Positions 4,551-37,427 of a stretch of 64,000 nt of DNA are shown here, piece after piece. Position 1 is the stretch's first letter; each line of letters begins with the position of its first letter. The position numbers and the translations under genes are program-made. The DNA comes from Mobula birostris. Taxonomy: Eukaryota. Where the stretch lies: positions 97,611,604-97,675,603 of the forward strand of contig NC_092383.1 of NCBI RefSeq assembly GCF_030028105.1, written 5' to 3'. The notes below the pieces were generated by a model. The model worked only from the letters and a program-made list of their open reading frames with translations, was not told the DNA's origin and made no database searches.

Positions 4551-4602
4551 ATGTGGATGGTCTCGCCCCTGCTCTGTGTTGTCGCCTGGGTCGCCCGTGT
4601 GG
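4551..4602 (+). CDS. Exon 1: signal peptide MWMVSPLLCVVAWVARV(A)
   Basis: ATG at 4551, hydrophobic 17-mer, phase-1 donor G|gtaagg at 4603; joins exon 2 in frame to give ...VARVAGTG|DSSTTV, a plausible cleavage region. Confidence 0.75.
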
Positions 4603-4959
4603 GTAAGGTCATATGTGGTGATCGATAGTGATTAGAGAACAGGAAGATCTTCCAGCTTCTCCCTTCTCCCGTGTGTTCAGAGTTCTGTCTCTTGCTCTCC
4701 TCTCTCCCTCTGTGTTCCAGAGTTCTGTCCCTCCCTCATCACTCCCCCCTCTCCTCTTCCCCTCTCCTCTCCACATCCCCTCTTCCCCTTCCCCCGTCCC
4801 CTCTGGTCAGAGCTCTGTTTATCCCGCTCCCTGTTCCCAGTGTTCAGAGCTCTGTCTACCTCTCTTCATAACTCAGAGCCTACCTTTGCCTTTCGCTCTC
4901 TCTCCCTTCGTCCATGTAGACAGAAATGATTTCGATCAAACTCTAGAGTTGGAGAGAGG

Positions 4960-5500
4960 TTTTCCTCATGGTGCAAACGCTGTGAGAATAATTGTGCTGT
5001 GGATGTCACAGCGCTTCCTTCCTGATTGTTTTCTGTTGGACAAGAGGCCAAGCATACAGTTGCAAAGGGAGGTGTTGTGTCTCATTTCTAGGAGTTTGGA
5101 GATGATTTTCCTTGGAATTGTGAAATGGAAGATGGATCTATTGTTGTTAAACAATTGCCTAAGGTAGGTGTCTTTACTACACGTGGACAGGGTGAAGACT
5201 CCCTCTGGATGGTACAAACATTGTTTCTGTGAACTGCAGTGAGGCGGAGAACTCCATGCCACAGTGAGAAGGAGATGATCTGTCCAGCTGGCTGGAGGTG
5301 GTTTGTCACCTAATGTTGATGTTCACTCCTAAGAACATGAAGGTCTCAACCTTCACAACTTCTACATCATTGATGCAGTATGTACACTGCTTCATCTTGA
5401 AATCAATGAACAACTCTTTTGTTTTGATGGCATTGAGGGATAGGTTGTTGTTATGACCCCATTTCACTTGGTGCTCTGTCTACTTCCTGTACTTAGATAA
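4960..5500 (-). mobile_element. Rex-Babar RT fragment (old)
   Basis: Degraded HNTSLCNCMLGLLSNRKQ..IHSTIILT and ELLLILR-type RT sequence homologous to 596..1270. Confidence 0.55.
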
Positions 5501-5569
5501 GTGCAAAGTGTTGTAGTTTGGGAAGTTAAACCAGACAATAATATACACAGCAAAAGGCAAGCCTTGGAC

Positions 5570-7150
5570 ATAGAAACATAGAAACATAGAAAATAGGTGC
5601 AGGAGTAGGCCATTCAGCCCTTCGAGCCTGTACCGCCATTCAGTATGATCATGTCTGATCATCCAACTCAGAACCCTGTACCAGCCTTCCCTCCATACCC
5701 CCTGATCCCTTTAGCCACAAGGACCATATCTAACTCCCTCTTAAATATAGCCAATGAACTGGCCTCAACTATTTCCTGTGGCAGAAAATTCCACAGATTC
5801 ACCACTCTCTGTGTGAAGAAGTTTTTCCTAATCTCGGTCCTAAAAGGCTTCCCCTTTATCCTCAAACTGTCACCCCTCATTCTGGACTTCCCCAACATCG
5901 AGAACAATCTTCCTGCATCTAGCCTGTCCAATCCCTTTAGGATCTTATACGTTTCAATCAGATCCCCCCTCAATCTTCTAAATTCCAACGAGTACAAGCC
6001 TAGTCGATCCAGTCTTTCATCATATGAAAGTCCTGCCATCCCAGGAATCAATCTGGTGAACCTCCTCTGTACTCCCTCTATGGCAAGAATGTCCTTCCTC
6101 AGATTAGGGGACCAAAACTGCACACAATACTCCAGGTGTGGTCTCACCAGGGCCTTGTACAACTGCAGTAGTACCTCCCTGCTCCTGTACTCGAATCCTC
6201 TCGCTATGAATGCCAGCATACCATTCGCCTTTTTCACCGCCTGCTGTACCTGCATTCCCACTTTCAATGTCTGGTGTATAATGACACCCAGGTCTCATTG
6301 CACCTCCCCTTTTCCTAATCGGCCACCATTCAGATAATAATCTGTTTTCCTGTTTTTGCCACCAAAGTGGATAACATCACATTTATCTACATTAAATTGC
6401 ATCTGCCATGAATTTGCCCACTCACCCAACCTATCCAAGTCACCCTGCATCCTCTTAGCATCTTCCTCACAGCTAACACTGCCACCCAGCTTCGTGTCAT
6501 CCGCAAACTTGGAGATGCTGCATTTAATTCCCTCATCGAAGTCATTAATATATATTGTAAACATCTGGGGTCCCAGCACTGAGCCTTGCGGTACCCCACT
6601 AGTCACTGCCTGCCATTCTGAAAAAGTCCCGTTTATTCCCACTCTTTGCTTCCTGTCTGCCAACCAATTCTCTATCCACATCAATACCTTATCCACAATA
6701 CCGTGTGCTTTAAGTTTGCACACTAATCTCCTGTGTGGGACCCTGTCAAAAGCCTTTTGAAATTCCAAATACACCACATCCACTGGTTCTCCCCTATCCA
6801 CTCTACTAGTTACATCCTCAAAAAATTCTATGAGATTCGTCAGACATGATTTTCCTTTCACAAATCCATGCTGACTTTGTCCGATGATTTCAACGCTTTC
6901 CAAATGTGCTGTTATCACATCTTTGATAACTGACTCTAAAATTTTCCCCACCACCGATGTTAGGCTAACCAGTCTATAATTCCCCGGTTTCTCTCTCCCT
7001 CCTTTTTTAAAAAGCGGTGTTACATTAGCCACCCTCCAATCCTCAGGAACTAGTTCAGAATGTAAAGAGTTTTGAAAAATTATCACTAATGCATCCACTA
7101 TTTCTTGGGCTAATTCCTTCAGCACTCTGGAGCGCAGACCATCTGCCCCT
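5570..7150 (-). mobile_element. CR1 (HER1-like) LINE, 5'-truncated, young
   Basis: ORFs 6295..7125 and 5668..6267 give RT (QHGF, GVPQGSVLGP, FADD) plus C-terminal domain, split by one stop; (ctatgttt)n tail at about 5570-5590. Confidence 0.95.
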
Positions 7151-7154
7151 GGGG

Positions 7155-7915: not shown

Positions 7916-8119
7916 GTAGTCCTGATCACCTAGGTATACGGAAGGATGTCATTAAATTGAAAAAGGTGCAGAATGCATTTATGCAGCTGTTATTAGGACG
8001 GAAGGGTTGGAAACATAGAAACATAGAAAATCCTAGAGCACAAAAGGGATTTTGTTGTTTCTTCGTATCTGGGTTCAGTGGTTTGTCAGTGCACACCATG
8101 ACACTGGATATTCTCTCTT

Positions 8120-12240: not shown

Positions 12241-12241
12241 C

Positions 12242-12967: not shown

Positions 12968-15662
12968 CACATAGAACCATAGGACCATAGAAACTACAGC
13001 ACAGAAACAGGCTCCTTGGCCCTTCTTGGCTGTGCCGAACCATTTTCTGCCTAGTCCCACTGACCTGCACACGGACCATATCCCTCCATACACCTCCCAT
13101 CCATGTATCTGTCCAATTTATTCTTAAATGTTAAAAAAGAACCCACATTTACCACCTCGTCTGGCAGCTCATTCCATACTCCCACCACTCTCTGTGTGAA
13201 GGAGCCCCCCCTAATGTTCCCTTTAAACTTTTCCCCACTCACCTTTAACCCATGTCCTCTGGTTTTTTTCTCCCCTTGCCTCAGTGGAAAAAGCCTGCTT
13301 GCATTCACTCTATCTATACCCATCATAATTTTATATACCTCTGTTAATTCTCCCCTCATTCTTCTACGCTCCAGGGAAAAAAGTCCTAACCTATTCAACC
13401 TTTCTCTGTAACTGAGTTTCTCAAGTCCCGGCAACATCCTTGTAAACCTTCTCTGCACTCTTTCAACCTTATTTATATCCTTCCTGTAATTTGGTGACCA
13501 AAACTGAACACAATACTCCAGATTCGGCCTCACCAATGCCTTATACAACCTCATCATAACATTCCAGCTCTTATACTCAATACTTCGATTAATAAAGGCC
13601 AATGTACCAAAAGCTCTCTTTACGACCCTGTCTACCTGTGATGACACTTCTAGGGAATTTTGTATCTGTATTCTCAGATCCCTCTGTTCCACTGCACTCC
13701 TCAGTGCCTTACCATTAACCCTGTATGTTCTACGTTGGTTTGTCCTTCCAACGTGCAATACCTCACACTTGTCAGTATTAAACTCCATCTGCCATTTTTC
13801 AGCCCATTTTTCCAGCTGGTCCAAGTCCCTCTGCAGGCTCTGAAAACCTTCCTCACTGTCTACTACACCTCCAATCTTTGTATCATCAGCAAACTTGCTG
13901 ATCCAATTTACCACATTATCATCCAGATCATTGATATAGATGACAAATAACAATGGACCCAGCACTGATCCCTGTGGCACACCACTAGTCACAGGCCTCC
14001 ACTCAGAGAAGCAATTTTCTACCACCACTCTCTGGCTTCTTCCATCGAGCCAATGTCCAATCCAATTTACCACCTCTCCATGTATACCTAGTGACTGAAT
14101 TTTCCTAACTAACCTCCCATGCAGGACCTTGTCAAAGGCCTTACTGAAGTCCATGTAGACAATATCCACTGCCTTCCCTTCATCCACTTTCCTGATAACC
14201 TCCTCGAAAAACTCCAACAGATTGGTCAAACATGACCTACCACGCACAAAGCCATGTTGACTCTCCCTAATAAGCCCCTGTCTATCCAAATGCTTGTAGA
14301 TTCTGTCTCTTAGTACTCCCTCCAATAACTTACCTACTACTGACGTTAAACTCACCGGCCTATAATTTCCCAGATTACTTTTTGATCCTTTTTTAAACAA
14401 TGGAACAACATGAACCACTCTCCAATCCTCCGGCACTTCACCCGTAGACAGCGACATTTTAAATATTTCTGCCAGGACCCCTGCAATTTCAACACTAGTC
14501 TCCTTCAAGGTCCGAGGGAATACCCTGTCAGGTCCCGGGGATTTATCCACTTTAATTTTCCTCAAGACAGCAAGCACCTCCTCCTTTTCAATCCGTACAG
14601 TTGCCATGGTTTCACTACTTGATTCCCTCAATTCCATAGATTTCATGCCAGCTTCCTTAGTAAATACAGACGCAAAAAAAACCTATTTAAGATCTCCCCC
14701 ATTTCCTTTGGTTCTGCACAAAGCCGACCACTCTGATCTTCAAGAGGACCAATTTTATCCCTTACAATCCTTTTGCTCTTAATATACCTGTAAAAGCTCT
14801 TTGGATTATCCTTCACTTTGACAGCCAAGGCAACCTCATGTCTTCTTTTAGCCCTCCTGATCACGTTCTTAAATATTTTCTTGCACTTCTTATACTCCTC
14901 AAGCACCTTACTTACTCCCTGCTTCCTATACACGTCATACAACTCCCTCTTCTTCTTTATCAGAGTTGGAATATCCCTTGAGAACCAAGGTTCCTTATTC
15001 CTATTCAATTTGCCTTTAATCCTGACAGGAACATACAAACTCGGCACTCTCAAAATTTCCCCTTTGAAGGCTTCCCACCTACCAATCACATTTTTGCCAG
15101 AGAACAACCTGTCCCAATCCACGCTTTTTAGATCCTTTCTCATTTCTTCAAATTTAGCCTTCTTCCAGTTCAGAACCTCAACCCTAGGACCAGATCTATC
15201 CTTGTCCATGATCAAATTGAAACTAATGGCGTTATGATCACTGGAACCAAAGTGCTCCCCTACACAGACTTCCGTCACTTGCCCGAATTCGTTTCCTAAC
15301 AGGAGATCCAATATTGCATCCCCTCTAGTTGGTCCCTCTATATACTGATTTAGAAAACTTTCCTGAACACATTTTACAAACTCTAAACCATCTAGACCCC
15401 TAACAGTATGGGAGTACCAATCAATGTATGGAAAATTAAAATCCCCTACCACCGCAACTTCATGTTTCCTGCAGTTGTCTGCTATCTCTCTGCAGATTTG
15501 CTCTTCCAAGTCTCGTTGACTATTGGGTGCTCTGTAATACAATCCCACTAATGTGGCCATACCTTTCCTGTTTCTCAGCTCCACCCATAGGGACTCAGTA
15601 GACAAGCCCTCTAATCTGTCCTGCCTGAGCACTGCTGTAATATTTTCCCTAACAAGCAACAT
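12968..15662 (-). mobile_element. CR1 LINE ORF2 (APE + RT), near-intact, 5'-truncated inside APE
   Basis: ORF 14643..15662 (VGLYYRAP, VGDFNFP, SDHNAI) and ORF 13051..14646 (QHGF, GVPQGSVLGP, FADD) are separated only by a frameshift at the A8 run 14674-14681; (ctatggtt)n tail near 12968-12990. Confidence 0.97.
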
Positions 15663-15925: not shown

Positions 15926-16619
15926 TTGACTTTAGTCTCCAGTACATACAGTAAGTGGAGCGAGAAACGGCTCAGCCTGAGTTCCAGTTTAGCAACAGGT
16001 CAATGAGCTGTGATATTGAACGGTGGTTACATGAGGTTGCCTCCTGCTTCTGTATCAGAGGAAATATTTCTCAACTCATCATACTGCCGAATTCTCCTAC
16101 TTTCTCTCCACCCACACTGCAGTGATTATCAGCTCCCCCCGCAACCTGTTCACAAAACCTCGGCCAGGAGCAACAAACCGCCTCACCTTCTCCCTCACTC
16201 CTCCTTCAGGGATCCGTGGATGTGCCCGACAAGGCCCCACTCCGAGCTCCCTCTGTCCCTCACAGCACTCACGAACTTCCATTTATCACATGTTCCCTCA
16301 ACACGTTCGCCTCCCCAAGCACCTCACCCAACCCTTCTCCCGACTGGCTCTCATTTTTCATGCCTGTGCCCCTCTGACCTGCCTTTGATATCTGGCTGCA
16401 GGCTGCAACTTCCATCCTCCGGACTCGGTGCAAAGAGTCTTCACTCTGTTCCTCCCTTGAGCTTACCGTGTACTGTTGGAATGGTGGTCTGCTTCTCTCA
16501 CAGGGCCGGGAGACAAACAATGAGACCCATCACCCACTCTTGTAACTCTGATTCTCCCAGTCTGATTCATCCTCCAGTTACTGAGCTCATCTGCTGACTG
16601 TCTCCTCTTGTCTCCTCAG

Positions 16620-16940
16620 CTGGGACTGGGGATTCCTCTACCACTGTGAACGGAACTCGGGGACGCTCAGTCTCCTTACCTCCTGGGATACCAGTCGGAC
16701 CAGACATTGCTCAGCTTGTGTGGAGACGGTTCTCACCCAGGGCGAAGATAGTGACATATTCAAACAAGAACAGTGACTATTACGGATCTGAGGAGTACAA
16801 GAGACGGATAATTCTTCATCCCAGGAACTTCAGTCTGGAAATCCATGATCTACAGAAAAGTGACTCTGATGATTATGAGGTGTCTGTTACAGCATTTTCA
16901 GGAGCACAGACTCAGAACAAAATGCGACTGGAGGTGTACG
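16620..16940 (+). CDS. Exon 2: N-terminal IgV domain, CD2/SLAM type (no cysteines)
   Basis: Acceptor ttgtctcctcag|, donor G|gtgagt; (A)GTGDSSTTVNGTRGRSVSLP..LVWR..YKRRIILHPRNFSLEIHDLQKSDSDDYEV..LEVY; lacks the B-F disulfide, as CD2-family V domains usually do. Confidence 0.92.
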
Positions 16941-17689
16941 GTGAGTGAGACACCACGGAGAGGCTCAGGTTTCTTCGGTTCCTGAAACACCCCCAATTAA
17001 TGGGTGAGGGCAGATCCTGTGTGCTTCCCTGTTTACTGAACCCTACTGACCGCCCGTGTCCAGAGCTGGGCTCATGGTCCCAGTGTAGTGGGATTGAGAC
17101 AGTCTGGGGAACACACTTACCACATCCCCTGAGACTGAGTCAGAGCCCGAGAAGAAGTAATGATGACTCTCATTATTCTGAGTCCAGAGGAAATCAGCAC
17201 TTAGGTGGACTATGGAAGATGTGGTTACAGGGTGAGCGTTTAAACAGCATTTGGCCAGGTTCATGGATGAAAGGTCTGGAGGCAAATGGGACTAGCTTAG
17301 AACAGCACAGAGATTGTTGAGTTGGGCTGAATGGCCTCTTTCCATTGATGTTTCTCTACTTGACCCATGGGAACCTGAACTGAACAATGGACCCATAAGG
17401 TGGGAGGATCTGTAAAGGGGGTGAGTGGTCTGTGGGTCACTGTATCCCCAGTTAAAGATCTGGTCTGTCATGTTCAGGGATTCAAGTTATCCCATCAGTT
17501 TCCCAGGGCACTACTTGTTAATTGCCCAGACTGAGCTCAGCAAAGTGTTTATTCCTCAGCCTTCATGCTGTGCTGTGCTGACTGATACCCTGTGTACTCA
17601 TTACACTGAATATAGTGTCCCAGTGAGTGACACGGTACACGGGCACAACAGCACACTCACACACACCAATATGGTTCCTGACTCACTCT

Positions 17690-18859: not shown

Positions 18860-19915
18860 GATTGTTTTGGCTGAATTATTCAGCTATTGCTGCCTCTCTG
18901 ACTGGATGTCTGTGACAAGGCGAGTGCTGCAGGGATTTGTGCTAGGTCCATTGTTGTTTGCCATCTATATCAACGACCTGGGCAATAATGTGGTTAACTG
19001 GATCAGCAAATTTGCAGATGACATCAAGATTAGGGATATAGTAGACAGCAAGGAAGACCATCAGATCTTGCAGCGGGGTCTGGACCAGCTGAAAATGGAC
19101 TGAAAAATGGCACATGGAATTTAATGCCGATAAGTGTGACGTGTTTTTCTTTGGTAGGACCAACCAGGGTAGATCTTACACTGTGAATGGTATGCCACTG
19201 AGAAGTGTAGTAGAACGAAGGGATATAGTAATACAGGTCTATAATTCATCGGAAGTGGTGTCAGAGGTAGATAGGGTCGTAAAGAAGAATTTTGGAACAT
19301 TAGCCTTCATAAAGCAAAGTATTGAGTACAGGAGTTGGCATGTTAGTTGAAGTTGCATAAAATGTTGATGAGGCCTACTTTGGAATATTATGTGCGGTGT
19401 TGGTCACCTGCCTACAGGAAAGATGTAAATAAGGTTGAAAGAGTGCAGAGAAAATTTACAAGGTTGTTGCCGGGTCTGGAAGATGTGAGTTATAAGGAAA
19501 GATTGAATAGGTTAGGACATTATTCCTTGGAATGTAAAAGACTGAGGGGACACTTGATTGAGATATACAAAATTATGAGGGTATAAATAGAGTAAATGCA
19601 AACAGGCTTTTTTTCACTGCAGTTGGGTAGGACTACAAACAGAGGTCATGGGTTAAGGGTGAAAGGTGAAAAGTTTAGGGGGAACATGAGGGAAAAATTC
19701 TTCACAGAGGGTCATGAGAATATGAAATGAGCTGTCACCAGAAGGGCAAGCTCAATTTCAACAGTTAAGAGAAGTTTGGACAGGTACATGTATGGTACTG
19801 TATGGAGAGCTATGTTCCCGGCACTGGTCGATTGGAGCAGACAGTTTAAATGATTTTGGCATGGAGCAGATGGACCAAAGATCTGTTACTGTGCTGTAAT
19901 CTTCTATGACTTGAT
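18860..19915 (+). mobile_element. CR1 LINE 3' part (degraded RT to tail)
   Basis: VLQGFVLGPLLFAIYINDL..FADD, MEFNADKC and RPTLEYYV..WSP motifs in ORFs 18867, 19114 and 19347. Confidence 0.9.
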
Positions 19916-20169
19916 GACTGTTCTAAACTCTGGGATGGTGTCTTTTCTATGTTGTAAGTGAATTGCGGACAAGTGTACATGGATAGGAGGCTGGTTTCCA
20001 TGATATACTTAGTTGTGTTCACAACTCTCTGCAGTTTCTTACGGTCACATACAAAACAGTTGCCATAACAAGTGTGATGCACCCATGATGCTTTCTATGG
20101 TGCATCTACAAAAGCTGGTGAGGGTTAAAGGGGACATGCCAATGGTTTTTAGTGTGTTGAAGTGCTGTT

Positions 20170-21490: not shown

Positions 21491-21757
21491 ATCCTGTGTC
21501 AGGTACAGTCATCATGGTTCAGTACATCGTCAAGACTTGCAATATCATCTTGATCTGCTCTGAAGATTCAGGCAACTCCATTTTCAGGTGGTGGAGGGGA
21601 GGAGAAGTTGTGGGAACTGGCAGCTACTATCACCTCCAGCAGCATGGAGAGGCGAAAGGGGACGAAGAAGTCCTGTATAAGTGTGAGGCCCGGAACCCCG
21701 TCAGTAACGAAATGACAGAGGTCTGGCTGGGAGACATCTGTGGAAAGAACAAATCTG
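21491..21757 (+). CDS. Exon 3: IgC2 domain, CD2/SLAM type
   Basis: Acceptor ..ctcgacctcag|, donor G|gtgagt; (D)PVS..TCNIILICS..FRWWRG..YKCEARNPVS..DIC: four-cysteine pattern and the ARNPVS motif diagnostic of SLAM/CD2 C2 domains. Confidence 0.93.
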
Positions 21758-23012
21758 GTGAGTGTCAGAGGGAGCAATTGGAATTTAGAGAGGCTGCCCA
21801 GACTGTTCAATAAGATAGTGCTGATGGAGTTTTACTTTGTGTCTAATCTGCGCCCTTTTACAAAAAAAAGTTTACATACATTCACTGACTTTCATGAGAA
21901 TGGTTCTCATTTTAAAACATGGACATCCCTGTCCAGGACACATTCCAGTCCCGGAATATCCACTGATCGAAGAAGACATGGTATGCTTCCTTCCCCAGGG
22001 ACACCTGAGCATGGACATTTCCTCAGAAGAGGCACAGGCATTTGGTTCAGTCAGGAACCTCGATAGCTCTTTGTCAGGAACTAGGAATTCCAGGCTGAGG
22101 TAGACAGACAACAAATTTTCCTCCTCACTGGGTTGACTCTTGCTGTCCTGTGCTGGCTCTTGGTCTGGGGAAGGTTTCTTCACCCCAGTCATCTGGGAGC
22201 TGTCCACACAAGACTGTAATCAACCTTTCTTCCCACACAGCCTTGGGAGATGTGGGCCATTCACCTGGGGGTGTGGAGGAAGTTCACTGGGGTTAAACAA
22301 AATCAGTGCATTTATAACCCCACCCCACGGATTTGTCATCCTCTCCAAACACCCTCAACATTGCTCTGCCAGACTGACATTATATAACAGAAGGAAAGCT
22401 TTTCCTTTTGTGCAAGAATAAACTGTTCTCTGTGTGCTCACTCCCTCCACTGAGGCTGATGACAGTCTGGGCCCTCCCCACCTCCCCCTCTTTTCCATTG
22501 TCCCACACACTGACTGGCGATTTCCAATTGTAAATTCAGCTGAGTATTTCTTTATAAATATGATTTTCATATTAACATACACACTCGCATTGCAATATGT
22601 ACATAATTGAAGTTAACACATTGCCCTCTAGAGAGCCCATGTGCTCCTTCTCCTGGGACACGCAGGTATGGACACAACTCCAGAAGAAGGGCATTTGGCT
22701 CAGGGAAAACCCTCAAGTGGCCACCACTTGGATCCGAAAATGGTCACCTTGGCCAGGCCCAAGAGCAGACCGATCTGGAGAATTCCCAAGAGACTCACCT
22801 GCCTTTGCATTGAGTGACCAAAGGTCACAAGGGTAGGGCTGAGGTGCAGCAGACCTTGAGGTACAGTGCCTTCACATGGTTCAGTAGTCCTACAGCCTCT
22901 CACACTCCATATATACATGATACACTCTCTCCTCAAGGCTGCAGAAATGAGAGGTGGCTAGGGAGCCCGTTAATTGACTTGGGAACCTGTCACACAACAT
23001 TCTCTTCTCCAG

Positions 23013-23188
23013 GCCCCAGTGTCCAGTGTGAAAAACTGAAGAGTTTGCAGGAGCAGCCTGCAAAAGAAATACCTCTGCTCCTGGAGAAATGTCATAGAGA
23101 GGCCAGATCTCAAGAGGAGCCTCTGAGCCTTGGTCTGATGAATAGTTCTGGCCGTGGGTGGCAATCTGGTCTGAACGACCCTCAGTGA
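23013..23188 (+). CDS. Candidate alternative terminal exon (would give a secreted L-V-C2 form, 271 aa)
   Basis: Strong acceptor attctcttctccag|GC, phase 1, open to TGA at 23186-23188 (GPSVQCEKLKSLQEQPAKE...). No transcript evidence and no clear nearby polyA signal. Confidence 0.3.
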
Positions 23189-24734
23189 TGAGTCTCCTCA
23201 ACACCCGTTGTGACAGAACGGCCGGAGGCTTCAGCTATGAGTCTCATCCAATCCACTGCTTCATCCACCCACCCATCCATGGAGCCAGAAAGTCTCTCAC
23301 TGCTGGTGGAGGAACACTCTGAATGAAGGTGACCGTCCCAGTTCAGTACAACAGAGCAGGACAGCTGATATCTATTGCTGGGAGTCCTCCCGAGGGACAG
23401 TGTCTCTGGTAGATACACCACACCACCAGTCTGGGAGGATGCCCAGTGTGAAGATAACCCTGCAGGGTCTGAAAGTGGAACATTTCAGCCTGCCCTGTCC
23501 TAGAGGTCTGTGTTGAGACATTGTAGATGGGTTTGACTCTGTATGTAACCCTAGCCTGCCCTGTCCTAGAGGTGTGTGTCGGGACATTGTAGAGGGTTTG
23601 ACTGTATATAAACCCAGCTCTCCCTGGTGTGGGAACCCATAATGATGGGCCCACAGATGTTGGGAACTCATGAAACTGAGGAAGGTCATGTGGCCCATTG
23701 TGAACCAGCTCTGAAATTACTGAATCACCAGAAGATTTCAGCAAATGTGGCTCTTCAGCCTGTCAATTCCTGCTAGCTTCATGCTGTATCAGTCCAGCTC
23801 ATTTCACATATTCACACCTCTCTCTCTCTCTCTCATTCAGTGAGAGAGTGACTGGTCCTATTCATGCAGGGTTTGATCTGTGTGAGGACCATCATGGCCT
23901 CCACCTCCCCTCCCAACACATGACAATGTTTTCCCTGGAGTACACTCCCCACTTCCCTCTCACCGTTCGGTCTAGTACTTTCTGTGGCTCTTGGTATTGT
24001 CTTCTCTGCCCAGAGACAGAGATCCTTTCTGTTTAGTCAGAGACCCTCATCGTTTCACCACCCTATTAAATCTGCCCTCAGCCTCTGTTCCCTCATTGTG
24101 CCATGACCCCTCCATCAACCTTCCCCAGCCCTGTTCCATCCACAGAGCTCTCTTGTCCTGCCTCAGCTCTGACCATCCCCACCCAGACATTCATTATCCC
24201 CGTTCACAGATCTGGGATCCTGATCAACAAATGCAGGGATACAGACTGCCTCACCCTCTTGTCATTCCTCATTCAAAGATCTGTGGGCAAGTTCCCTTTG
24301 TCCCTCCACACCACTTACACTCTCCCATTCATCCCACCTTCCCTCATCATGTTCACCTTCCCCAAACAGTACCCCCACTGCATCCGTGGATGGGGTCCAA
24401 TTTGTCATGTCTGTGCCCCACCACGCCCAGCTCTGCCCCCTCTATTGATATCTGGCTGCAAGTTGCAACTTCCTTCCTCAGGACCAGGTGCAAGAAGTCT
24501 TCACTCTTCCCTGTGTGGGCTCAGTGTGGCCCAGCTCTCTCACTGGGCTGGGACCCAGACAATGTGCCAGCAGACTCCCCTCAAGCCATCAGGCTAATCT
24601 ACACCTCCACCGATAAACCCACCACCATTATGTTGTAACTTCCTGTCAGAGTAACATAATGTACAGATATTCCACTACCTATTGTCACTTTATGAACATG
24701 CAATCAGTTTATGTACATCAGCTACTCTTATGTA

Positions 24735-24845
24735 GGATTTCGGCCCAAAATGTCAACCGTTTATTCATTTCCATTGATGCTGCCTGACCTGCTGAGTTCC
24801 TCCAGCATTTTGTGTTTTGCTTTGGGTTTCCAGCATCCGCTGCCT
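24735..24845 (+). mobile_element. Penelope-like terminal repeat remnant inside a Rex-type 3' end
   Basis: gatttcggcccaaaatgtcaaccg..gatgctgcctgacctgctgagttcctccagcattttgtg..ccagcatc. Confidence 0.7.
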
Positions 24846-24963
24846 GTCTCATGTCTATGTTTATTGTTTTGTTTATGCTTCATGTTTTTTTTATGCTACA
24901 TCGGATCCAGTGACAATTATTTTGTTCTCCGTTACACTTGTGTACTGAAGTGTGACAATAAAC

Positions 24964-26219
24964 TGTCATGGTCCGGATCGGGGTCCCTTTAAATTTACTT
25001 TGTTTATGTTACGATCCGGACCGTTGACTCCCTGTTGCCCTTTGGTTCCCTGTTTTCCCGTGTCTCTCGGCTTTGGTGATTGGAGGCAATTTACTCTCGA
25101 CTGAACCGATAGTTTATGGTCTCCGGCTTTCAGCCGTTCGGCGCAAGAGCGTTTGCAAAGTCGCCAAAGGTACAGTGTGCCAATGTCATCTGGCCGGAGC
25201 AAGCCTAGTCTCCGCCCGAAGCGAGTGCCGGTAATTCGCCTTTCCTCACCGGAGCAACCCTGTCAAGTTACCTTGCCAAAGCGAGCTTGCAAAGTTTCCT
25301 CACCGAGGTGGGTCCGTCAGTTAACCCACCGGAGGGAATCAAGAACCGCTGTCCACTGTTTCCGGGCCGAGTCGAGAGCTCGCCACTACCCAGAGGCTCC
25401 AAATCAGGTCCGGCTCCAGGGGCATCCAAGTACCAAGTCGAGTCCCGGCCCTGGCGGCATCCAAGTACTGAGTCGAGTCCCGGCCCTGGTGGTCTATGAT
25501 TCCTGTCCTACCCCACTGTCTGAACCCCTTCTCTGTCCCTCTCGCCTCTCGCCCTTGTCTGCAGCCCTTGCCTGCACTTCGGTCTAGTTCTATTGCCGGA
25601 GCTAGATAGGTACTGTCTGGTGTTCTTTTGTGTTGGTCTCATCTTGTCCTTGCCTCCATGGGGTAAGTATGAACACCTTGCCATTGCCCCGCAGGGGGTC
25701 ATGTCTTGTCATATCTTGTCCTCACCTCCGTGGGGTAAGTCAGGCCGTCTTGCCATTGCCCCGTGGGGGTGTCATGAGTCCCGGCCCTATGTCCTGTACC
25801 CAAGGAGGGGTCCCGACTCTGTGTTCTGTGTATGTGTCCATGGTTCCATGTGCCTGCTCTCCCAAGACTGAGGTTCTGTTTTTCCATGTTCCTCCTCTCC
25901 CTAGCCCCTGTCATGTCCATGCCTGGTTCTGGGGTCCAAGCCCGGGGCAAGACCCAGGTACTGGGTCCTTGCCCAGTCTCTGGCTCGGAGTCCATACCCT
26001 AGCCTCTTCATGTCACTGCTGGTTCTGGGATCCAATTCCGAGTCCTAGCCCAGACCCCTAGTCCCAGCCTAGTCGTAGTCCTGAGTCCTTGTCCAGTTCG
26101 CTATTCCTGCTTCTGCTTTGCTCTCCTGGTATCAAACAATAAACTCAATTTAATTAACCTCACAAGATGTGTCTTGCATTTCGGTCCACCCTTGCTCCCA
26201 ATGCCCCACCATTGTGACA
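24964..26219 (+). mobile_element. Solo LTR (Gypsy/BEL-type), copy 1
   Basis: TGTCA...TGACA termini, AATAAA near the 3' end, 5-bp TSD taaac (24959-24963 / 26220-26224); homologous end to end to 46665-47870. Confidence 0.88.
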
Positions 26220-26327
26220 TAAACAACCTTGGATTTGAATCCTGAAACTTGAAATGGCTGCTCCTGTGTCTGTGATTCCTCAGCACTAATTCCTCCTCCT
26301 GATAACTGTTTTCACTTGTCTCCTCAG

Positions 26328-26636
26328 ATGAGATTCTCGTCCTGGAAGGTGCCCTCGGAAAAGTGGCTCGGTTAACTCCTGAGATCCTAAAAGCACCAAA
26401 AATTACCAATGTTGTGTGGAGAATATTATCAGACTCAACCAAGATAGCAGAATGCATGAATGGGAAATTGACATATCTCAATACTAAAAAGTACAAGCAA
26501 CGGATAAAATGTCATCCAGGGGACTGTAGTTTAATAATCCATGATCAACAGAAAGAGGACACTGATGTTTATGAGGTGATTGTTACAGCAAGTACAGGAA
26601 CACGGACTAGGAGGAAAGTGCAACTGAAGGTAGCTG
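26328..26636 (+). CDS. Exon 4: second IgV domain (paralogue of exon 2)
   Basis: Acceptor ttgtctcctcag|, donor G|gtaagt; (D)EILVLEGALG..VVWR..YKQRIKCHPGDCSLIIHDQQKEDTDVYEV..LKVA; gap-free alignment to exon 2. Confidence 0.9.
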
Positions 26637-27159
26637 GTAAGTGAGATACTGTGAAGGGGTCCGGGTTTCACCAGTTCCTGAAACACCCCTAATTAATGGG
26701 TGAGGGCAGATCCTGTGTGTTCCCCTGTTTTCTGAGCCCCACTGTCTGCCCGTGTCCAGAGCTGGGCTCATGGTCCCAGTGTAGTGGGATTGAGCCAGTG
26801 TGAGGCTCGAGGACACACTTACCACATCCCCAGAGACTGGACCAGAGGCTGTGAAGCAACAAACTGCCAATGGGAAACCACATGACTCTGAGGCTGGAGG
26901 AGCTGAGTACATATGGAGTGGAAAACAGAGCAATAGCCAATGGGGTGGGAGGGACTGTAATGGATGGGCCAAATGGTCTATATCTGTGGGTCACGGTTAA
27001 ACAGATCCCACAGCATCTCCAGGTCAAAGGTATGGTCTGTCATGTTCAGGGATCCCAGTTCCGTCTATTTCTCAGAGCACTGCTTGCTAATGGCCCAGAC
27101 TGCGGTCTGAGCTCAGCAAAGTACACAGATACAAGAGCACACCCACACCCAGCATAACA

Positions 27160-27345
27160 GAATCACAAGCAAGAGAAAATCTGCAGATGCTGGACATCTG
27201 AGCAACACACACAAAATGCTGGAGAAACTCAGCAGGCCAGGCAGCACCGAAGGAAAAAAGTACAGTCGACGTTTCAGGCCAAAACCCTTTGGCAGTCCTT
27301 TGAAGGGTCATGACCTATAACGTCGACTGTTTACTCTTTTCCATA
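27160..27345. mobile_element. Fold-back mini-Penelope element
   Basis: Long copy on - strand (ctgcagatgctgg..gtcgacgtttcaggcc) followed by a short + copy (gaagggtcatgacctataacgtcgactg); TSD not found. Confidence 0.7.
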
Positions 27346-28539
27346 CTTTTGATTTTTGTTTATTAATTGAAGGGTAAAATGAAATACAGTACAACAAGTA
27401 AATCTTTCATGTTTCAAAACTTTTTCTAGCTGCATCCAATTCCTGCTGCATGGCAACAAAGGCTATGTGCATGAGGGCATTTCAGTTATTGCGCAGCCAT
27501 GTGCCTGTGCAGTTTTAGAGGGAACAGTGCTGAGGTAATAATAAGCTGTCACTTTTGCTCAGTGTGACTTTACCCTTCCCCACGGAGCCTCATAGTGACC
27601 ACAGTGCCAACCACCTGGCTGCTGCTGCTGTGGCCTGAAAGGTCATTTCCCCATCTACCCCCAGCAGCAGCGTCTAAAGGGAAGTACTTGTTGCTGCTCC
27701 CTCTACCTTTCCTGGTGTTCACCAACTCATCTGCAGTGTACCTGTGACTACTGCACACAAACTGTTATCAATGATGGTCTCAGCGTCCTGGATGGCCCTG
27801 AATATATCCTCCTTCAGTTCCAGCAACTTAGCATGGTCAGTCAGGAGCTGCATAGTTCAAGGGATTGGCTATCATGTCTGTGGACCCAGCAGCTCACTTC
27901 ATCCCCCAACCCCAAATGGTCTCTGCACCTCAAGACCACCCTTCAACTTAGTGAGAGTATTTCCTCCTTCCCTGAGGGGTACAGAGGCTCAGACACTCTA
28001 TCAAACAGGAAGTCACCACCTCCAACACTCCATCCTCTTGCCTGACTTCCCCAGCCTTGGAACAGGTGGACTTCCCAAGGTCAGGCCCAGGGAAAGGGCA
28101 GTACTGGAGATGGTGGCCAGGTAATGTGAATGGAAGTGTTCAGTTACCCTCTGCACCTTCCTTCCACCCAAAAAGTCCCCTCCCTCCTTACCAGCTGCTG
28201 ATCCTCACCTACTTCCTCGGGCGTGGGTTAGAGGCCAGGCATAACAGTACTATCCCAGTGGCACAAAGCGCAGCCTGAGGGTTGGGACACACAGCTATCT
28301 GTCACTGGGAAGCAAACAATGAACTGCCCGTCAGTAACCTCCTTCCACATCAGCTTGCGGTAGAAAGAGGAGACGTGGCTGCTGTGCTGACGATTGAGTG
28401 GGAATGGGGTGATCTCCAGCAGCACCTCCCAGAAGATGCAGATGGTAGAGAAGGAGCTCATGGGGAATAGGCTGATTAGAAAGCTGCTGGAGACCTCGTG
28501 TGTCCACCAGCAGAAATATCTCATCCACAGTGAGTCCTT

Positions 28540-31360
28540 TAGAGTCATAGTCAAAGAGAAATACAGCACAGAAACCGGCCCTTCTGTCCATCTAATCCAT
28601 GCTGAAACCATTGAAACTGCCTACTCACAATGACCTGCACCGACATCATTGCCCTCCATATCCCTACTATCCATGTACCTACCTATCCAATTTTCTCTTA
28701 AGCATTGAAATGGAGCTCGCATGGACCACTTGCACTGGCAGCTCATTCCACAATCTCGTGACCCTCTGAGTGAAGAAGTTTCCCTTCACTTCTAACCTTT
28801 CAACCTTAACCAATGATCTCTGGTGGTAGTCCTACCCAACATCAGTGGAAAAAGCCTTTGTGTTGCCCCTATTATACCCTCATAATTTTGTATACCTTTA
28901 TAAATCTCCTCCCAATTGTCCACATTCTAAAGAAAACAGTTGTGATCTATTCAATCTTTCCTTATAATCCAGGTCCTCCCGACCCAGCAACAGCCTTGTA
29001 AATTTTCTCTTCACTCTTTCAACCCTGTTTACATCCTTCCTGGAGGTAGGTGACCAAAACTCCATTCAATGCTCCAAATTAGGCCTCACCGATGTCTTAT
29101 ACAACTTCATCATAACATCTCATCTTCTGAAGGCCAATGTGCCAAAAGCTTTCTTTATGACCCCCATCTATGATGTCATTTTCAATGAATTATGAATCTG
29201 TATTCCCAGATCCCTTTGTTCTACCACAGTCCTCAGTGCCCTACCATTCACTGCGTAAGACCTGCTGTTGGTCCTACTGAAATGCCAAACCTCGTACTTG
29301 TCTGTCTTAAATTCCATCTGCCATTTTTCGGTCCATTTTTCCAGCTGATACAGATCACTTTGCAATCCATGATATCTTTCCTCACTGTCCACTGCACCCC
29401 AAAACTGTCATCCACAAATTTGCTGATCTAGTTATCCACATGATTATTTAGATCATTGATACAGATGGCAAACAACAAAGGACCCAGCATTGACACCACT
29501 AGGACACCACTAGTTACAGGCCTCCAGTCCGAGAGGCAACCCTCTACTAGCACTTCTGGCTTCTTCCACAAAGCCAATGTCTAATCCAATTTACTCTCTC
29601 ATCCTGAATGCCAAGCAACAGATCCTTCTTGACCAGACACCCATGTCGGACCTTGTCAAATGCCTTTCTAAAACATCTACTACCTTGCCTTCATCCACTT
29701 TCCCAGTAACTTCCTCGATAAAAACTTACAAGATTAATTAGACACGACATACCACGTACAAAGCCATGCTGACTATCCTTAATCAGTCCATATCTATCCA
29801 ATTACTGATATATCTGGTCCCTCAGAGCCTTTTTTTAAACAGTGAAACACCATTGGCTATCCTCCAATCCTTTGGTACCACTCCTATAGTTAAGGGTGGT
29901 TTAAATATCTCTGCTAGGCCCCTGGAAATTTCTGCACTTGGTTTCCACAGGATCCGAGGGAACACCTTGTCAGGTCCTGTGGATTTATCCACACTGATTT
30001 GTCTCAGGGTGGCAAACACCTCCTGCTCTGTAATCTGTGGAGGATCCATGAAGTTGCCACTATGGCTCACTTCTGTAGACTCTGTATCCACCCGCCCCCA
30101 CCCCCCCCCAAGTAAATACAGATGCAAAGAAGGCATTTCAGATCTCCCCCCATCTGTTCTGGCTCCACACATGGACTACCATTCATGTCTTCCAGCAAAC
30201 CAATGTTGTCCCTAGCAATCCTTTTGCTCTTAACATACCTGTAGAATCCTTCAGGATTCTCCTTCATCTTGTCTGCTAGAGCAACTTCAAACCTTATTTT
30301 AGTCTTTCTAATTTCTTTCTAAAGCCTTCCCTTGCATTTCTTGTGTTTCATGAGCACCTCATTTGTTCATACTTGCCTATGCCTGCTATATACCCCCTTT
30401 TATCTCTGAAACAGGGGCTCAAGATCTCTTGTAAACCAAAGTTCCCTATGCATGCTATTAATTCATGCATGCACCTTTTATTCTGACAGGCATATAAAAT
30501 CTCTATTCTGAAAATTTCATTTTTGAAGGCCTTCTAGTTTCCAAGTACACCTTTGTCAGAAACAGCCTGTCCCAAACCACACTTGCCAGATAATTTCTGA
30601 TACCATCAAAATTAGCCTGTCTCTAATTTAGGATCTCAACTCACAGACCAGATCTATCTCTTGGTATCATACACAAAATGCTGGGGAAATCAACAGGTCA
30701 GGCAGCACCTAAAGAAAACAGTACCATCGACCCTGAGGGTCTCGGCCTGAAATGTCAACTGTACTCTTTTCCATAGATGCTGCCTGGCCGGCTAAGTTCC
30801 TCTAGCATTTTGTGGGTGTTGCTTGGATTTCCAGCATCTGCAAATTTTCTCTTGTTTGTGAATTGGACTACCTCTTTGTATATTTACTTTAAAACTAATT
30901 GCATTGTTGTCAATAGATGCAAAGTGTTCCTCTGCACCAACTTCTGTCATCTGCCCTGTCTCATTTCCTAATAGCAGACTAATTATCAGCAACTCTCGTT
31001 GGGACTTCTACACACTGATGAAGGAAACTTTCCTGAATACATTTAACAAACTCTATCCCATCTCGTCCTTTTACAGTATGGGATTCCCAGCCATTATGTG
31101 GAAAGTTAAAATCACCAACTATAACAACCTTATGTTTCTGGCAACAGTCTGCGAGCTCTCTATAAATTTGTTCCTCTAAATCCTGTGGTTGGGTTGTTTG
31201 TAATTTAGCCCCATTAACATGGTCATTCCTTTTTGATTTCTCAGTTCCAGCCGTAACACCTCACTAGTCGAGTTCTCCAGTCAATCTGCGGTGATATTCT
31301 CTCTGACTAGTAACGCCAGCCCTCCTCCTTTAGTCCCTCTCACTCTGTCACATCTAAAAC
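28540..31360 (-). mobile_element. Old CR1 ORF2 (APE to 3' tail), degraded
   Basis: Pieces such as KENPEGFYRYVKSKRI, VDKSTGPDKVFPRIL and MEFKTDKYEV in ORFs 30067, 29822 and 29168 (-). Confidence 0.88.
30668..30867. mobile_element. Fold-back mini-Penelope element inserted in CR1
   Basis: Short - copy then long + copy; flanked by ctatctcttggtat (30654-30667) / ctacctctttgtat (30868-30881), 12/14 match. Confidence 0.7.
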
Positions 31361-31699
31361 AATGGAACCCCGTAATATTGAGCTGCCAGTCTTGCCCCTC
31401 CTGCAATCATGTCTTCCAAATGGCTACAATGTCCTAATTACAGGTGTTCCCGAGGGCAAGCAACATAATCCACTCGATTGTCAGGCTGAGCTCGGTCTAA
31501 CCCTAGACCTAACTCAAAGCTGTGACAGTTGCAAAAGAGACAACAATCTCAACCATTCCCTTTAAATAGACTGAGGTTCATGTTGGTGTGACCATAGTTT
31601 GTCTCCACACTCTTCCATAGCAGTTTGAACAGCGACTGTGCAATACGAATGAATGAAGCTGCAATGTTACTGGGTGTCTGATAACCACTCACTGGAGAA

Positions 31700-32075
31700 A
31701 GCGAGGTATCCATTGTGTCCACAGTGGTGTAACTGCGGGAACGTCCCACCACCAGAAAGAATGATCTGTCCCCCAGGCCCACACTGGCGTAACTGTGGGA
31801 ATATCCCACCTCTGGAGACAATGAATTGTCCAGCAGGCACACAGTGGTCTAACAATGGAATGGTACCACCACCGGCGAGAGACATCCATCAGGTCCACAG
31901 TGGTAATGGTGGGAGGGTCCCACCACCAGAGAGAATGAGCTGTCCATCAGGTCCACAGTGGTAACTGTGGAAACATCCCACCACCGGTGAGAATGCGATG
32001 ACCATTAGGCCCGCGGTGGTAACTGTGGATGGGTCCCACCAGTGGTGAGCATGCAATGACCATCAGGTCCACAGG
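31700..32075. repeat. Minisatellite, 56-60 bp unit, about 6.5 copies
   Basis: ccacagtgg(t)-like anchors at 31719, 31779, 31839, 31895, 31953, 32011 and 32069. Confidence 0.9.
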
Positions 32076-32971
32076 CCTTAGGAGATATAACCACAGTACA
32101 ATCCAGTAACAACAGCACAGGGGAGGAGAGATAAATTATGGTGGGGCAGGGAGTGGAAGTGTGGGTTGGGGGATCTGTTCCTGCTCTCCTGTGCTGGGTC
32201 TTTGACATTGTGCGGCCTCTTCACCCAGGATTGTTGAGGCCTCACAAAAGCCCCTGATATAAAAATCAATCTTCTTCATGCAGAGAGGCCCGGCTGACCT
32301 GGGCTGTGCACTTTACCATCACACTCTTTCACTGTCACACCCAGGTGATCTTCCAGCCTCTACCAACAGTATTTCATTCCACAGTCACCAATCATAGAGT
32401 GTAAGGAACATTGTCATCTCCACCTACTACCTGCTCCCCTCTTTCCCACCAGCATCAGTCAGAGGGAGACAGATCACCTCCCTCCATCTCCGCAGCAGAT
32501 GCATATACCGACTGAGCACAGATTCCTGCACTAACTCAGGCTCTGCGAGTGGGTGATGGGTCAGTGCAAACGGAGCTTGCCTCTGTGTCTAATTCCTGTC
32601 CTGTGAGTGTGCAAGGGCTGTGTCACCATTTCATACTAGAAGCAGTCAGTCAGTCAGAGTGTGCTGGGGGAGAGGGGTTACTGAGGGTCTGAGTGAGGGT
32701 GCTGGACTAACATCATATGAGGATACTGTCAGAGACATTGGAGACTACAATTAGAAGGGACGATATGGGGCTGTTTGGAGCGGATGGAGATATTCAAGGT
32801 GAGCGGGGTGGTGGAGCAGAGTGATGTGGGGCTGACTAGAGAGGACTGGGGCACGGTGTTGCAGTGACAGGGAGTTTTCTCTGGCCTGTGGTGGGATGGA
32901 CTGGATCCATCAATTCCTTGTCACTGGGAGTGTAAGGATGGGATTAATGACAGAATCTTTTATCTCCCCAG

Positions 32972-33112
32972 ATCCAGATCTCAGAACATCATACAATGGT
33001 TGGAAGGTCGCCACCGTGATCCTCATTGTGATCGTCGTGATCCTCATTCTGTATCTGGTTTATAATAAATACTGCATAAAGCTGCGTGATTCTCGCTCAC
33101 GTGGGAACAAAG
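32972..33112 (+). CDS. Exon 5: stalk, transmembrane helix and start of cytoplasmic tail
   Basis: Acceptor ttttatctccccag|, donor G|gtaagg; (D)PDLRTSYNGWK-VATVILIVIVVILILYLVY-NKYCIKLRDSRSRGNK. Confidence 0.85.
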
Positions 33113-34480: not shown

Positions 34481-34599
34481 CATCACCTCTTCTGGTTTCT
34501 GGATCACTGGGGAAGGATGAACTGTACAATAGGGTTGAATAACACCTGAACCCTAGTAGATGGTTAGCTTGACCTTGGCAATTGGGAAGGTTTTAAAAC

Positions 34600-36150
34600 C
34601 GATTATATCAGATGAAATTTCAGGATACTTGGAAGCAGGCGATAGAATAGGGTGAAGTTCGCACAATTTTGTTCTGATTCTTTGAGAAGGTAACAGGCCA
34701 GCTGAGAAAGGAGAGTAAGCTTCAGCAATTTACAAGTACTTTCACAAGGTATTTGACAAAGTTACACCCACGAGGCTATTGAACAAGATAATTCAAAATT
34801 TTGAAAGGGATAGATAAGATGGAAGTAGGAAAGTTGTTTCCATTGCTCGGTGAGACAAGAACTAGGGGATATTACCTCAAGATTCAGGGGAGAAGATTTA
34901 GGATGGAGATGAGGAGAAAATGTTTTTCCCAGGGAGTGGTTAATCTGTGGAATTCTCTGCCCAGGGAAGCAGTTGAGGCTTCCTCACAAGATATATTTAA
35001 GAAACAGTTAAATAGGTTTTTACACAGTAAGGGAATTAAGGGTTATGGGGAAAAGGCAGGTAGATGGAGATGAGTTTATGGACAGATCAGCCATGATCTT
35101 ATTGAATGGTGGGGCAGGCTCGATGGGCTGGATGGCCTACTCCTGCTCCTATTTCTTATGTTCTTATGTTTTTAAGAGCCCATGGCATCATTGGTAAGGT
35201 ACAGCATGGATAGAAGATTGTCTGACTGGCAGAAGTTAGAGAGAGTGGGGATATAAATGCTCTTTTTCGAACACCTGCCACAGACCAACGGAGTATCAAA
35301 GGTTTCTGGGCTGGGACGGTACCTTTTCACATTACACGTGAATGATCTCGATGAAGGAGCAGATGGCATTGTGGATATATCAGGATCAAGATAGCCCGGA
35401 GGTACAGTTGGTGTCACAGAGGCACAGAGTCGAGTCTGCTGCAGGACCTGGAGAGGTTGGGAGAATAGGCAAAGATGACTCTGAGAGGAAGAATAATGTT
35501 GTAGCCTGGAATGAAATGGACAGACAATTCGCGTTGAGTCAGTATTAAAGAAGGGGAATGAATTGTTAGTATTTAGTTTGGAAGGGTGTGGATATAATAG
35601 CAAGAACAAACTGCTGAGGCTTTGTAAGGAGTTGCTTAGACCCCATATGGAATATTGTGAACAATTTGTGTACTGTATCTAAGGAAATATGTGCTGCCTC
35701 TGGAGAGGGTCCAGATAATGTTCACAAGAATAATTGCCGGAGTGGAAGTCTTCAGGTATGAGGAGTGTTTGGCAGCTTTGGGCCTGAAAAGGATGGACCT
35801 CAGAAGAGTGATGGAAAGGATTCACTAAATCATAACAGGTACTGAAACGCCTGGATGACATGAAGGTGCAGAGGATGTTTGTCAGTGGGAGAGTCCAGGA
35901 CACAAGGGCACAGACTCAGAATAAAGAGATGTGCTTTTGGAACTGAGGTGAGAAGGAGTTTTTTCAGCCAGAGGCCAGGAATCTGGAATTTAAGGATGAG
36001 ATTGAAAGGTTTTCAATTGGTAGAGTAGTTCAGGGTTACAGAGAAAAGGCAGGAGAGTGGGGCTGCATAAGGAACCAACCACAGTAAAATGATGGAACAG
36101 GCTCAAAGGGCTAAATGTCTTAAATTTCCTCTTATATTTTATGGTCTTAC
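34600..36150 (+). mobile_element. Old CR1 RT-to-tail fragment with a younger CR1 3' end nested at about 34797-35170
   Basis: The old copy reads through as aacaagata|..|agagcccatggc; the nested piece has ORF 34801..35073 and a (cttatgtt)n tail. Confidence 0.8.
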
Positions 36151-36224
36151 GGATCTGCAGTAAATTGTGCTGACCACACTCCTCGATCTTTGACTCTCCA
36201 TTTCCTGTTCCTTATCCTGCACAC

Positions 36225-36662
36225 ACCCGATCACTGGGGTATACTGCCCTCACACCTGGTCACTCGGGTACACTGCCCCCAAACTCCCGGTCACTGGGGT
36301 ACCCTATCCTCCCACACACCCCATCACTGGGGTACACTGTCCCTGCACACCCAGTTGCTGGGGTACACTGCGCCCCCCCCCACACCAAATCACTGGGTCA
36401 CACTGTCCCCACACACCCAGTCACTGGGTCACACTGTCTCCACACACCCAGTCACTGGGTCACACTGTCTCCACCCACCCAGTCACTAGGTCACACTGTC
36501 TCCACACACCCAGTCACTTGGTCACACTGTCCCCACACACCCAGTCATTGTCCAACACAGACAATCACTGGGTCACACTGTTCCCACACACCCAGTCATT
36601 TTCCCACACAGACAGTCACTGGGTCACACTGTCCTCACACACCCAGTCATTGTCCCCACACA
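36225..36662. repeat. Minisatellite, 30-31 bp unit (cacacccagtcactgggtcacactgtc..), about 13 copies
   Basis: Directly visible tandem array; each unit contains the palindrome cccagtcactggg or a variant. Confidence 0.92.
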
Positions 36663-37362
36663 TATGGTTCGTCTTCATTGTCGCTATCTTTCAAGGTCGA
36701 GGATGATGGTCTTCGTTCCATAAATAGTGAAGACGCCTGTGCGTGTATTTGTTTAACGTGTACTTGATGTTGCACTCCAAGAAGCACACGATACTTCACA
36801 AATCAACCAACTGATTCCAATGGCATGGAAACCACGACGATTGGAGCTGATGGATTGGTTGCTGCCTTCATCCGCCTTCACAGCCGCTGAGTTCGAAGTA
36901 ACTTCGTCCGCCTGTTCCACTGTTGAGGTCATGGTTGGAGTACTGGAGTACTCAGTAACATAGGATTACCGGAGGACTCTGTACCCCTCATAACTAGTTA
37001 CTGGTGTACAATGTTCCCTACACACCCACTTACTGGGATTTACTGTCCTCCACACACCCAATTGTGAGATGTGGTGGGGAGACTTTGACTTGTGTGGGTG
37101 TGATGTTTTGCAGGATATTGACCAGTGTGAGAGATAGAGGCAGAGTAACTAAAGTGAGGTTTATGGGACATGTCAGTGGAGATGAGAATGAGGAAGGGAG
37201 TCGGGGTGTTGTGATTTGTGGCAGTCGAGGTGACATTGCAGAGGATGAGTAGGGACCAGATGAACATATCTCACGTTGAGGGTCACTGGGAGATTCTGTG
37301 GAGGGGAGGCCAGGTATCAGTATCACGACTGGAAGCCCTTAACTCTGCTCTCTATTCCACAG

Positions 37363-37427
37363 GCCAAGTGGAGACCCAGCCTTTGGAAAATCAAAAGAAG
37401 GAGCCTGCAACTGATGCCCCGGAATAG
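37363..37427 (+). CDS. Exon 6b: terminal coding exon, tail (G)QVETQPLENQKKEPATDAPE*
   Basis: Acceptor ctctctattccacag|GC, phase 1, TAG at 37425-37427. Confidence 0.65.

Follow-up and report, generated by a model that had tools for sequence, protein, structure and literature searches.

A gene model with an unpaired membrane-proximal V domain in the CD2/SLAM family of the giant manta ray

Introduction

Mobula birostris, the giant manta ray, belongs to the order Myliobatiformes. The stretch of its genome analysed here (the window) comprises 64 kb of eukaryotic DNA without gaps, and a six-exon gene of the CD2/SLAM family lies on its forward strand (Table 1). CD2/SLAM proteins govern the spacing and specificity of leukocyte contacts, and in the textbook view every V domain of these immunoglobulin (Ig) superfamily molecules is paired with a C2 domain. 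The product predicted for the window gene consists of a leader, a V domain (domain 1, exon V1), a C2 domain (domain 2), a second V domain (domain 3, exon V2), a transmembrane (TM) helix and a tail. This leader-V-C2-V-TM-tail arrangement is the only consistent model of the window gene as an intact member of the family, and we place its probability at about 0.78. The V-C2-V model is already present in RefSeq as a computer prediction, where the automatic names are uninformative. This paper describes the exons and domains of the gene, its relatives in other rays, and the probable origin of its third domain.

Gene structure

The exons have AG acceptors and GT donors at every internal junction and are in phase 1 throughout; the spliced open frame of 1155 nucleotides (nt) encodes 384 amino acids (aa). 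Residue for residue, the translation is that of XP_072135120.1 (P0072), named "SLAM family member 8-like [Mobula birostris]", and the coding span of that gene in the assembly (32,877 bp) corresponds exactly to 4551-37427. A sequence-only reading of the window had joined six phase-1 exons into one 384-aa frame, as the splice sites and the identity to the RefSeq protein bear out. Its exon borders also hold: the positions 26637 and 32971 that it named are the adjoining intron bases, and the true exon ends are 4602, 16940, 21757, 26636 and 33112.

Exon 5 has three donors, all in frame. The donor at 33112 (GTAAGG) is the RefSeq choice and gives the 384-aa product, that at 33130 (GTACAT) gives 390 aa, and that at 33142 (GTAGGT) gives 394 aa; the last of these products is colinear with the stingray orthologues.

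Table 1. Features of the window gene and its introns (window coordinates; LINE, long interspersed nuclear element; JC, Jukes-Cantor)
Feature	Position	Strand	Remarks
Exon 1: start codon and signal peptide (17 codons + 1 nt, phase 1), donor GTAAGG	4551-4602	+	Leader identical to P0077
Exon 2: domain 1, V-set without cysteine (CD2/SLAM type)	16620-16940	+	Pfam, PDB sequence matches, model
Exon 3: domain 2, C2-set, four cysteines (residues 141, 147, 189, 208)	21491-21757	+	Family C2 profile E 4e-31
Exon 4: domain 3, membrane-adjacent second V-set; strong acceptor tract, GTAAGT donor	26328-26636	+	Pfam V-set 1.7e-5
Exon 5: stalk, TM helix, start of tail	32972-33112	+	Further in-frame donors at 33130, 33142
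Exon 6: final 21 residues and TAG stop, no tyrosine motif	37363-37427	+	Tail ending as in P0073, P0075, P0077
Intron stretch before V1	16245-16447	+	72-75% identical to 24290-24507 (218 nt), JC distance 0.31
Intron stretch directly after V1	16941-17154	+	85% identical to 26637-26856, JC distance 0.17
Intron stretch before V2	24290-24507	+	Partner of 16245-16447
Intron stretch directly after V2	26637-26856	+	Partner of 16941-17154
LINE-derived repeat over much of intron 4, the place expected for a second C2 exon	28543-31445		Self-blastn to LINE copies

Domain identity and fold

Domain 1 matches the Pfam V-set family (1e-7) and, weakly, Receptor_2B4 (0.004), and its sequence matches in the PDB are CD48, CD58, SLAMF6, SLAMF5 and CD2. 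The V1 exon encodes no cysteine at all, so that the domain lacks the canonical B-F disulfide, as is characteristic of the family. Domain 3 has PDB sequence matches to CD48 and CD2 in addition to its Pfam match, and V2 is 41% identical to V1 (tblastn). The Pfam C2 matches of exon 3 are weak (0.02); its four cysteines are in the arrangement usual for the family.

In a full-length AlphaFold model, domain 1 is predicted with a local distance difference test score (pLDDT) above 90. The modelled domains 1 and 2 form a rigid pair that superposes on the structures of CD48/CD2 (2dru), NTB-A (2if7), CD2 (1hng and 1hnf) and CD58 (1ccz), with target template-modelling scores of 0.74-0.81 and root-mean-square deviations of 2.8-3.7 Å. 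Folded alone from an input alignment of 35 family V domains, domain 3 reaches a pLDDT of 91, and the structures that it matches best are N-terminal V domains, those of CD48, CD2, 2B4, CD84 and NTB-A (template-modelling scores 0.79-0.88). Structure prediction, one of the checks put forward with the sequence-only reading, thus matches both the domain 1-2 pair and domain 3 to CD2/SLAM-family folds, and the membership of the gene in this family, also proposed by that reading, finds support in Pfam, PDB sequence matches and modelled fold alike. The gene has one exon per domain and phase-1 introns, as do other members of the family, and differs from the usual two-domain V-C2 build (or V-C2-V-C2, as in Ly9) in being V-C2-V.

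Exon 5 encodes a ten-residue stalk and one uncharged TM helix, and the tail is about 35 residues long. The SAP-coupled SLAM receptors are SLAMF1, 3, 4, 5, 6 and 7, whose tails carry at least one immunoreceptor tyrosine-based switch motif (ITSM; TxYxxV/I). Neither an ITSM nor any other tyrosine motif was found in the tail of the window protein: the only tyrosines beyond the stalk (344, 347 and 350) lie at the membrane edge with no threonine at -2, and the 21 residues encoded by exon 6 contain none. The term "receptor" in its signalling sense, which had been applied to the gene, is therefore unsupported.

Orthologues and age of the third domain

The same leader-V-C2-V-TM-tail build was recovered by an exhaustive V2 profile search and a full-length search in several ray models: P0063 (M. 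hypostoma), P0073 (Hypanus sabinus), P0075 (Hemitrygon akajei) and a further copy in M. birostris, P0122. A second orthologous model from M. hypostoma, P0001 (XP_062921216.1), is without a TM exon. In P0001, V2 is joined straight to the last exon, which is read in another frame, giving 361 aa and no TM helix; the model stands for a soluble isoform or for a duplicate that has suffered damage.

Among 121 V domains of the family placed in one tree, those in third position in the V-C2-V orthologues form a single clade with a support of 100 in the Shimodaira-Hasegawa-like approximate likelihood-ratio test (SH-aLRT), on a long stem (0.71). This clade stands apart from all first domains and from the extra V domains of ray genes whose ectodomains consist of V domains only (all-V genes). 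Neither the tree nor pairwise identity is decisive in placing domain 3 among the family V domains; its branch is long, and it is 40-48% identical to many of them. Between manta and stingray, domain 1 is 66-71% identical, domain 2 71-76% and domain 3 65-69%, and within each orthologue domains 1 and 3 are 41-44% identical. Because the V2 exon is open, keeps its phase and changes at a domain-1-like rate in four species, it is best regarded as a working coding exon and not as a relic swept into the gene model. These comparisons of predicted proteins show the third domain to be a distinct orthologous type conserved across myliobatiform rays.

Two models from the sawfish Pristis pectinata (P0006 and P0083) are also V-C2-V-TM. 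Their second V domain is 62-67% identical to the first and falls in a different clade, and the V-C2-V build may thus have arisen more than once. A survey of other elasmobranchs, suggested along with the sequence-only reading, accordingly yields V-C2-V models in M. hypostoma, Hypanus sabinus, Hemitrygon akajei and Pristis pectinata. That reading had called the topology unusual, which is correct in so far as it is unlike V-C2 and V-C2-V-C2; the topology is not, however, peculiar to this locus, the third-domain clade being shared with the stingrays.

Alternative gene models

Hemitrygon (P0004) and Heptranchias (P0009) each have a Ly9-like relative of V-C2-V-C2 build, and intron 4 of the window gene is long (6.3 kb) and about half LINE-derived repeat, so that a divergent or interrupted second C2 exon might lie undetected within it and the true protein might be of this four-domain build. 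A C2 profile drawn from 88 family domains and applied with filters off to every open stretch in all six frames recovers exon 3 at the value in Table 1 and nothing better than E 0.7 in the rest of the window; its best score within 26637-32971 is only E 1.3. Searched by tblastn, the C2 exon finds itself (5e-62) and a runner-up at E 0.18 that lies outside the intron-4 interval. A scan of 26640-32971 for candidate exons (AG-to-GT, phase-1, open, 150-450 nt) returned just three candidates whose cysteine pair is suitably spaced; these overlap one another and all lie in antisense LINE sequence, with none outside it. A second C2 domain is likewise absent from the RefSeq models of the orthologues in M. 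hypostoma, Hypanus sabinus and Hemitrygon akajei. The hidden exon was rejected on these negative results from profile, exon scan and orthologues, and we consider its existence highly improbable; the earlier statement that no second C2 exon lies between 26637 and 32971 stands against tblastn, the family profile and the phase-1 scan. Hardly less improbable is the wrongful joining of two genes, one V-C2 and one V-TM. The family appears to be tandemly duplicated, and the sequence upstream of V2 has its homologue in intron 1 before V1, as would follow from the copying of an entire gene start. Yet no leader-like exon (best leader tblastn E 0.6 for 21757-26328) and no TM exon was found between the C2 exon and V2, a V-C2 gene that stopped at 21757 would lack both an anchor and a sensibly placed in-frame stop, and the identical join is modelled in four species. 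With no leader or TM exon in the interval and the join recurring in this way, the reading as two separate genes was also rejected. A V-domain profile finds the two V exons and no others in the 64 kb.

The alternative with more in its favour, though still an unlikely one, holds that V2 is a cassette exon, that the main product is an ordinary V-C2-TM protein, and that V-C2-V is a minor or regulated isoform. Every exon is in phase 1, and skipping of either V2 or the TM exon therefore keeps the frame: the product without V2 would be a canonical V-C2-TM protein of 281 aa, and that without the TM exon a soluble protein of 337 aa. Products other than the three-domain form may consequently exist or even predominate, and shorter and soluble isoforms of the window gene are possible. 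Exon-skipped RefSeq variants occur elsewhere in the family (the TM-less P0001; isoform pairs in Pristis and Hemitrygon). Two further points count against the three-domain form: a protein fragment bridging the C2-V2 junction (residues 165-265) was not found in a large protein collection, and the supporting proteins are all automatic RefSeq models, which are able to borrow from each other by homology. On the other side, the splice sites of V2 equal those of V1 in quality (a long pyrimidine tract and a GTAAGT donor), the exon is open and conserved at the domain-1 rate in five genes of four species, and no V2-less RefSeq isoform turned up for the window gene. The proposed V-C2-V splicing rests on gene models and conservation, and on that footing leader-V-C2-V-TM-tail remains the preferred reading.

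Probable origin by V-exon duplication

The introns flanking V1 and V2 are homologous (Table 1), which indicates that the third domain arose by V-exon duplication. The alignment of 16794-17154 with 26490-26856 (79% over 367 nt) covers the 3' half of the exon and 215 nt of intron, with identity above 90% around 17000-17085. Upstream, the block at 24290-24507 is separated from V2 by a repeat insertion (24963-26220, matching 46664-47871 at 75-87%), which is read as a later arrival that pushed this block away from the exon. Between the V1 and V2 exons the ratio of nonsynonymous to synonymous change (dN/dS) is 1.13, with dS 0.52. Duplication of a V exon plus its flanks, followed by fast amino-acid change, would fit these values.

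The downstream introns (16964-17120 and 26660-26820) are 83-93% identical, above the V exons themselves (45-83%). Such likeness after the V exons might mean that the genome evolves slowly and the introns are decaying neutrally, that gene conversion has acted, or that the V exons in the cluster have a splicing element in common. At gathering thresholds, Rfam yielded no family anywhere in the window, although a minimal motif could escape such a scan, and the conserved post-V intron stretch is unmatched.

Origin by internal V-exon duplication, as first proposed from the sequence, is thus favoured by both the family V identity of V2 and the homologous flanks. As an event specific to this locus it does not hold: the third-domain clade is shared with the stingrays, where the domain is already a distinct type, and the duplication therefore predates the manta-dasyatid split. 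A relic C2 domain is not present in the window, so an ancestral V-C2-V-C2 gene with later loss of C2 is neither supported nor refuted. The third domain would accordingly have a history in which a V exon with its intron flanks was duplicated before the split of manta and dasyatid rays, diverged fast (dN/dS about 1.1 against V1), and was conserved thereafter.

Paralogues and a recent sister copy

The same chromosome-scale sequence of M. birostris carries the paralogues P0077, P0087, P0089, P0092, P0098, P0008, P0018 and P0122, and another family paralogue, P0017, is on a different sequence. P0122 (XP_072135119.1, "CD48 antigen-like", 385 aa) lies outside the window, and beyond the leader it differs from the window protein at three residues. 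Its leader is of the type seen in the stingray and M. hypostoma orthologues (MAFGWFL...), which was not found in the window, whereas exon 1 of the window gene encodes 17 signal-peptide residues that match the all-V paralogue P0077 of M. birostris exactly. From these identities, the 5' end of the window gene seems to stem from an all-V neighbour, and the pair points to duplication in the very recent past accompanied by an exchange of the 5' end.

Since two near-identical copies are named "SLAM family member 8-like" and "CD48 antigen-like", the RefSeq names carry no orthology; other relatives bear automatic names such as "unc-89-like", "NCAM2-like" and "CEACAM5-like". The ray and shark members retrieved comprise V-C2(-TM), V-V-V-TM, V-C2-V(-TM), V-V-C2-V and V-C2-V-C2 builds. 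Full-text searches of the literature brought up no account of either a V-C2-V member or a ray SLAM family.

Comparison with known CD2/SLAM proteins

The best sequence and fold matches of the window protein fall in the family of CD48 (SLAMF2), CD58, SLAMF8 and SLAMF9. In common with these proteins it has an N-terminal V domain without the intersheet disulfide followed by a four-cysteine C2 domain, one exon per domain, phase-1 introns and no ITSM. Unlike them, it has a third, V-type domain between the C2 domain and the membrane. The likeness to the named mammalian members is at the level of the family, and "SLAM family member 8-like" is an automatic name. The canonical architecture of the CD2/SLAM family and the short-tailed SLAMF8 and SLAMF9 have been described (PMC4718992).

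Ly9/SLAMF3 (V-C2-V-C2) is the one mammalian member with a repeated V domain, a feature shared by the window gene. In contrast to Ly9, the repeated V of the window gene has no C2 partner and the tail has no ITSM. The V pairs within ray and shark V-C2-V-C2 models, such as the Ly9-like relatives named above, are 77-95% identical, as opposed to 41-44% in genes of the window type. The ray all-V genes (V-V-V-TM; P0077, P0076, P0003 and others) probably belong to the same cluster as the window gene and resemble it in their leader type, their stalk, TM and tail exons, and their phase-1 cassettes. They differ from it in having lost C2, and their second and third V domains fall in other clades.

Repeats in the window

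A nearly intact LINE occupies 13051-15662 of intron 1 on the reverse strand. It encodes a 339-aa endonuclease open reading frame (Pfam Exo_endo_phos_2, 5e-9) and a 531-aa reverse-transcriptase open reading frame (RVT_1, 6e-35), which are in different frames and overlap by 4 nt (14643-14646). The repeat in intron 4 matches, by self-blastn, LINE copies at 12969-15659, 18891-19919, 54687-55514 and 58006-60824; the intron-4 repeat itself and the copies at 18891-19919, 54687-55514 and 58138-60824 are older than the copy in intron 1. The segment 12975-13798 is 95% identical to 54687-55514. The youngest repeat pair in the window is inverted (5571-6675 and 49446-50550), with 95% identity over 1105 nt. 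Short tandem or dispersed direct repeats with units of about 120-190 nt, 71-75% identical, are found at 31685-32074 in intron 4 and at 36222-36655 in intron 5.

Proposed function and significance

The window gene would encode a type I surface glycoprotein with a signal peptide, a cysteine-free V domain, a four-cysteine C2 domain, a second V domain, a stalk, a TM helix and a motif-free tail. By analogy with CD2, CD48 and the SLAM proteins, domain 1 would present the trans-binding face, to itself or to another member of the cluster. The extra V domain would lift this face by roughly one Ig domain, and, lying next to the membrane, it may add a second interaction surface; the sequence-only reading had proposed a change in receptor height and ligand geometry, which may follow from such an arrangement. 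Because the tail has no docking motif for SAP or EAT-2, the role of the protein would probably be that of a ligand or adhesion partner, comparable to CD48, CD58 and SLAMF8/9, rather than that of a self-signalling receptor.

A more speculative proposal, which we hold to be possible and less probable than otherwise, is that the ray cluster evolves by shuffling of phase-1 V and C2 cassettes, aided by alike intron flanks, which would have given rise to the coexisting builds V-C2, V-V-V, V-C2-V, V-V-C2-V and V-C2-V-C2, and that V2 is, instead of a spacer, a second recognition module giving the protein two binding specificities. In support of this tentative idea, V2 may have a conserved surface of its own, as suggested by its distinct clade, its unusual amino-acid composition and two new cysteines (on the C' and E strands). 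If the proposal is true, one specificity might be, for example, for a cis partner near the membrane and the other for a trans partner at the tip.

Rays appear to break the pairing of V with C2 in several ways, and the window gene would be the cleanest intermediate, in which V-C2 is kept and a lone, old and conserved V domain lies below it. The automatic names hide what appears to be a coherent ray-specific family. Its series of paralogues, sharing leader, anchor and tail, would be natural material for relating the height and domain order of the ectodomain to adhesion, and the same series may bear on how Ig receptor architectures diversify by exon cassettes.

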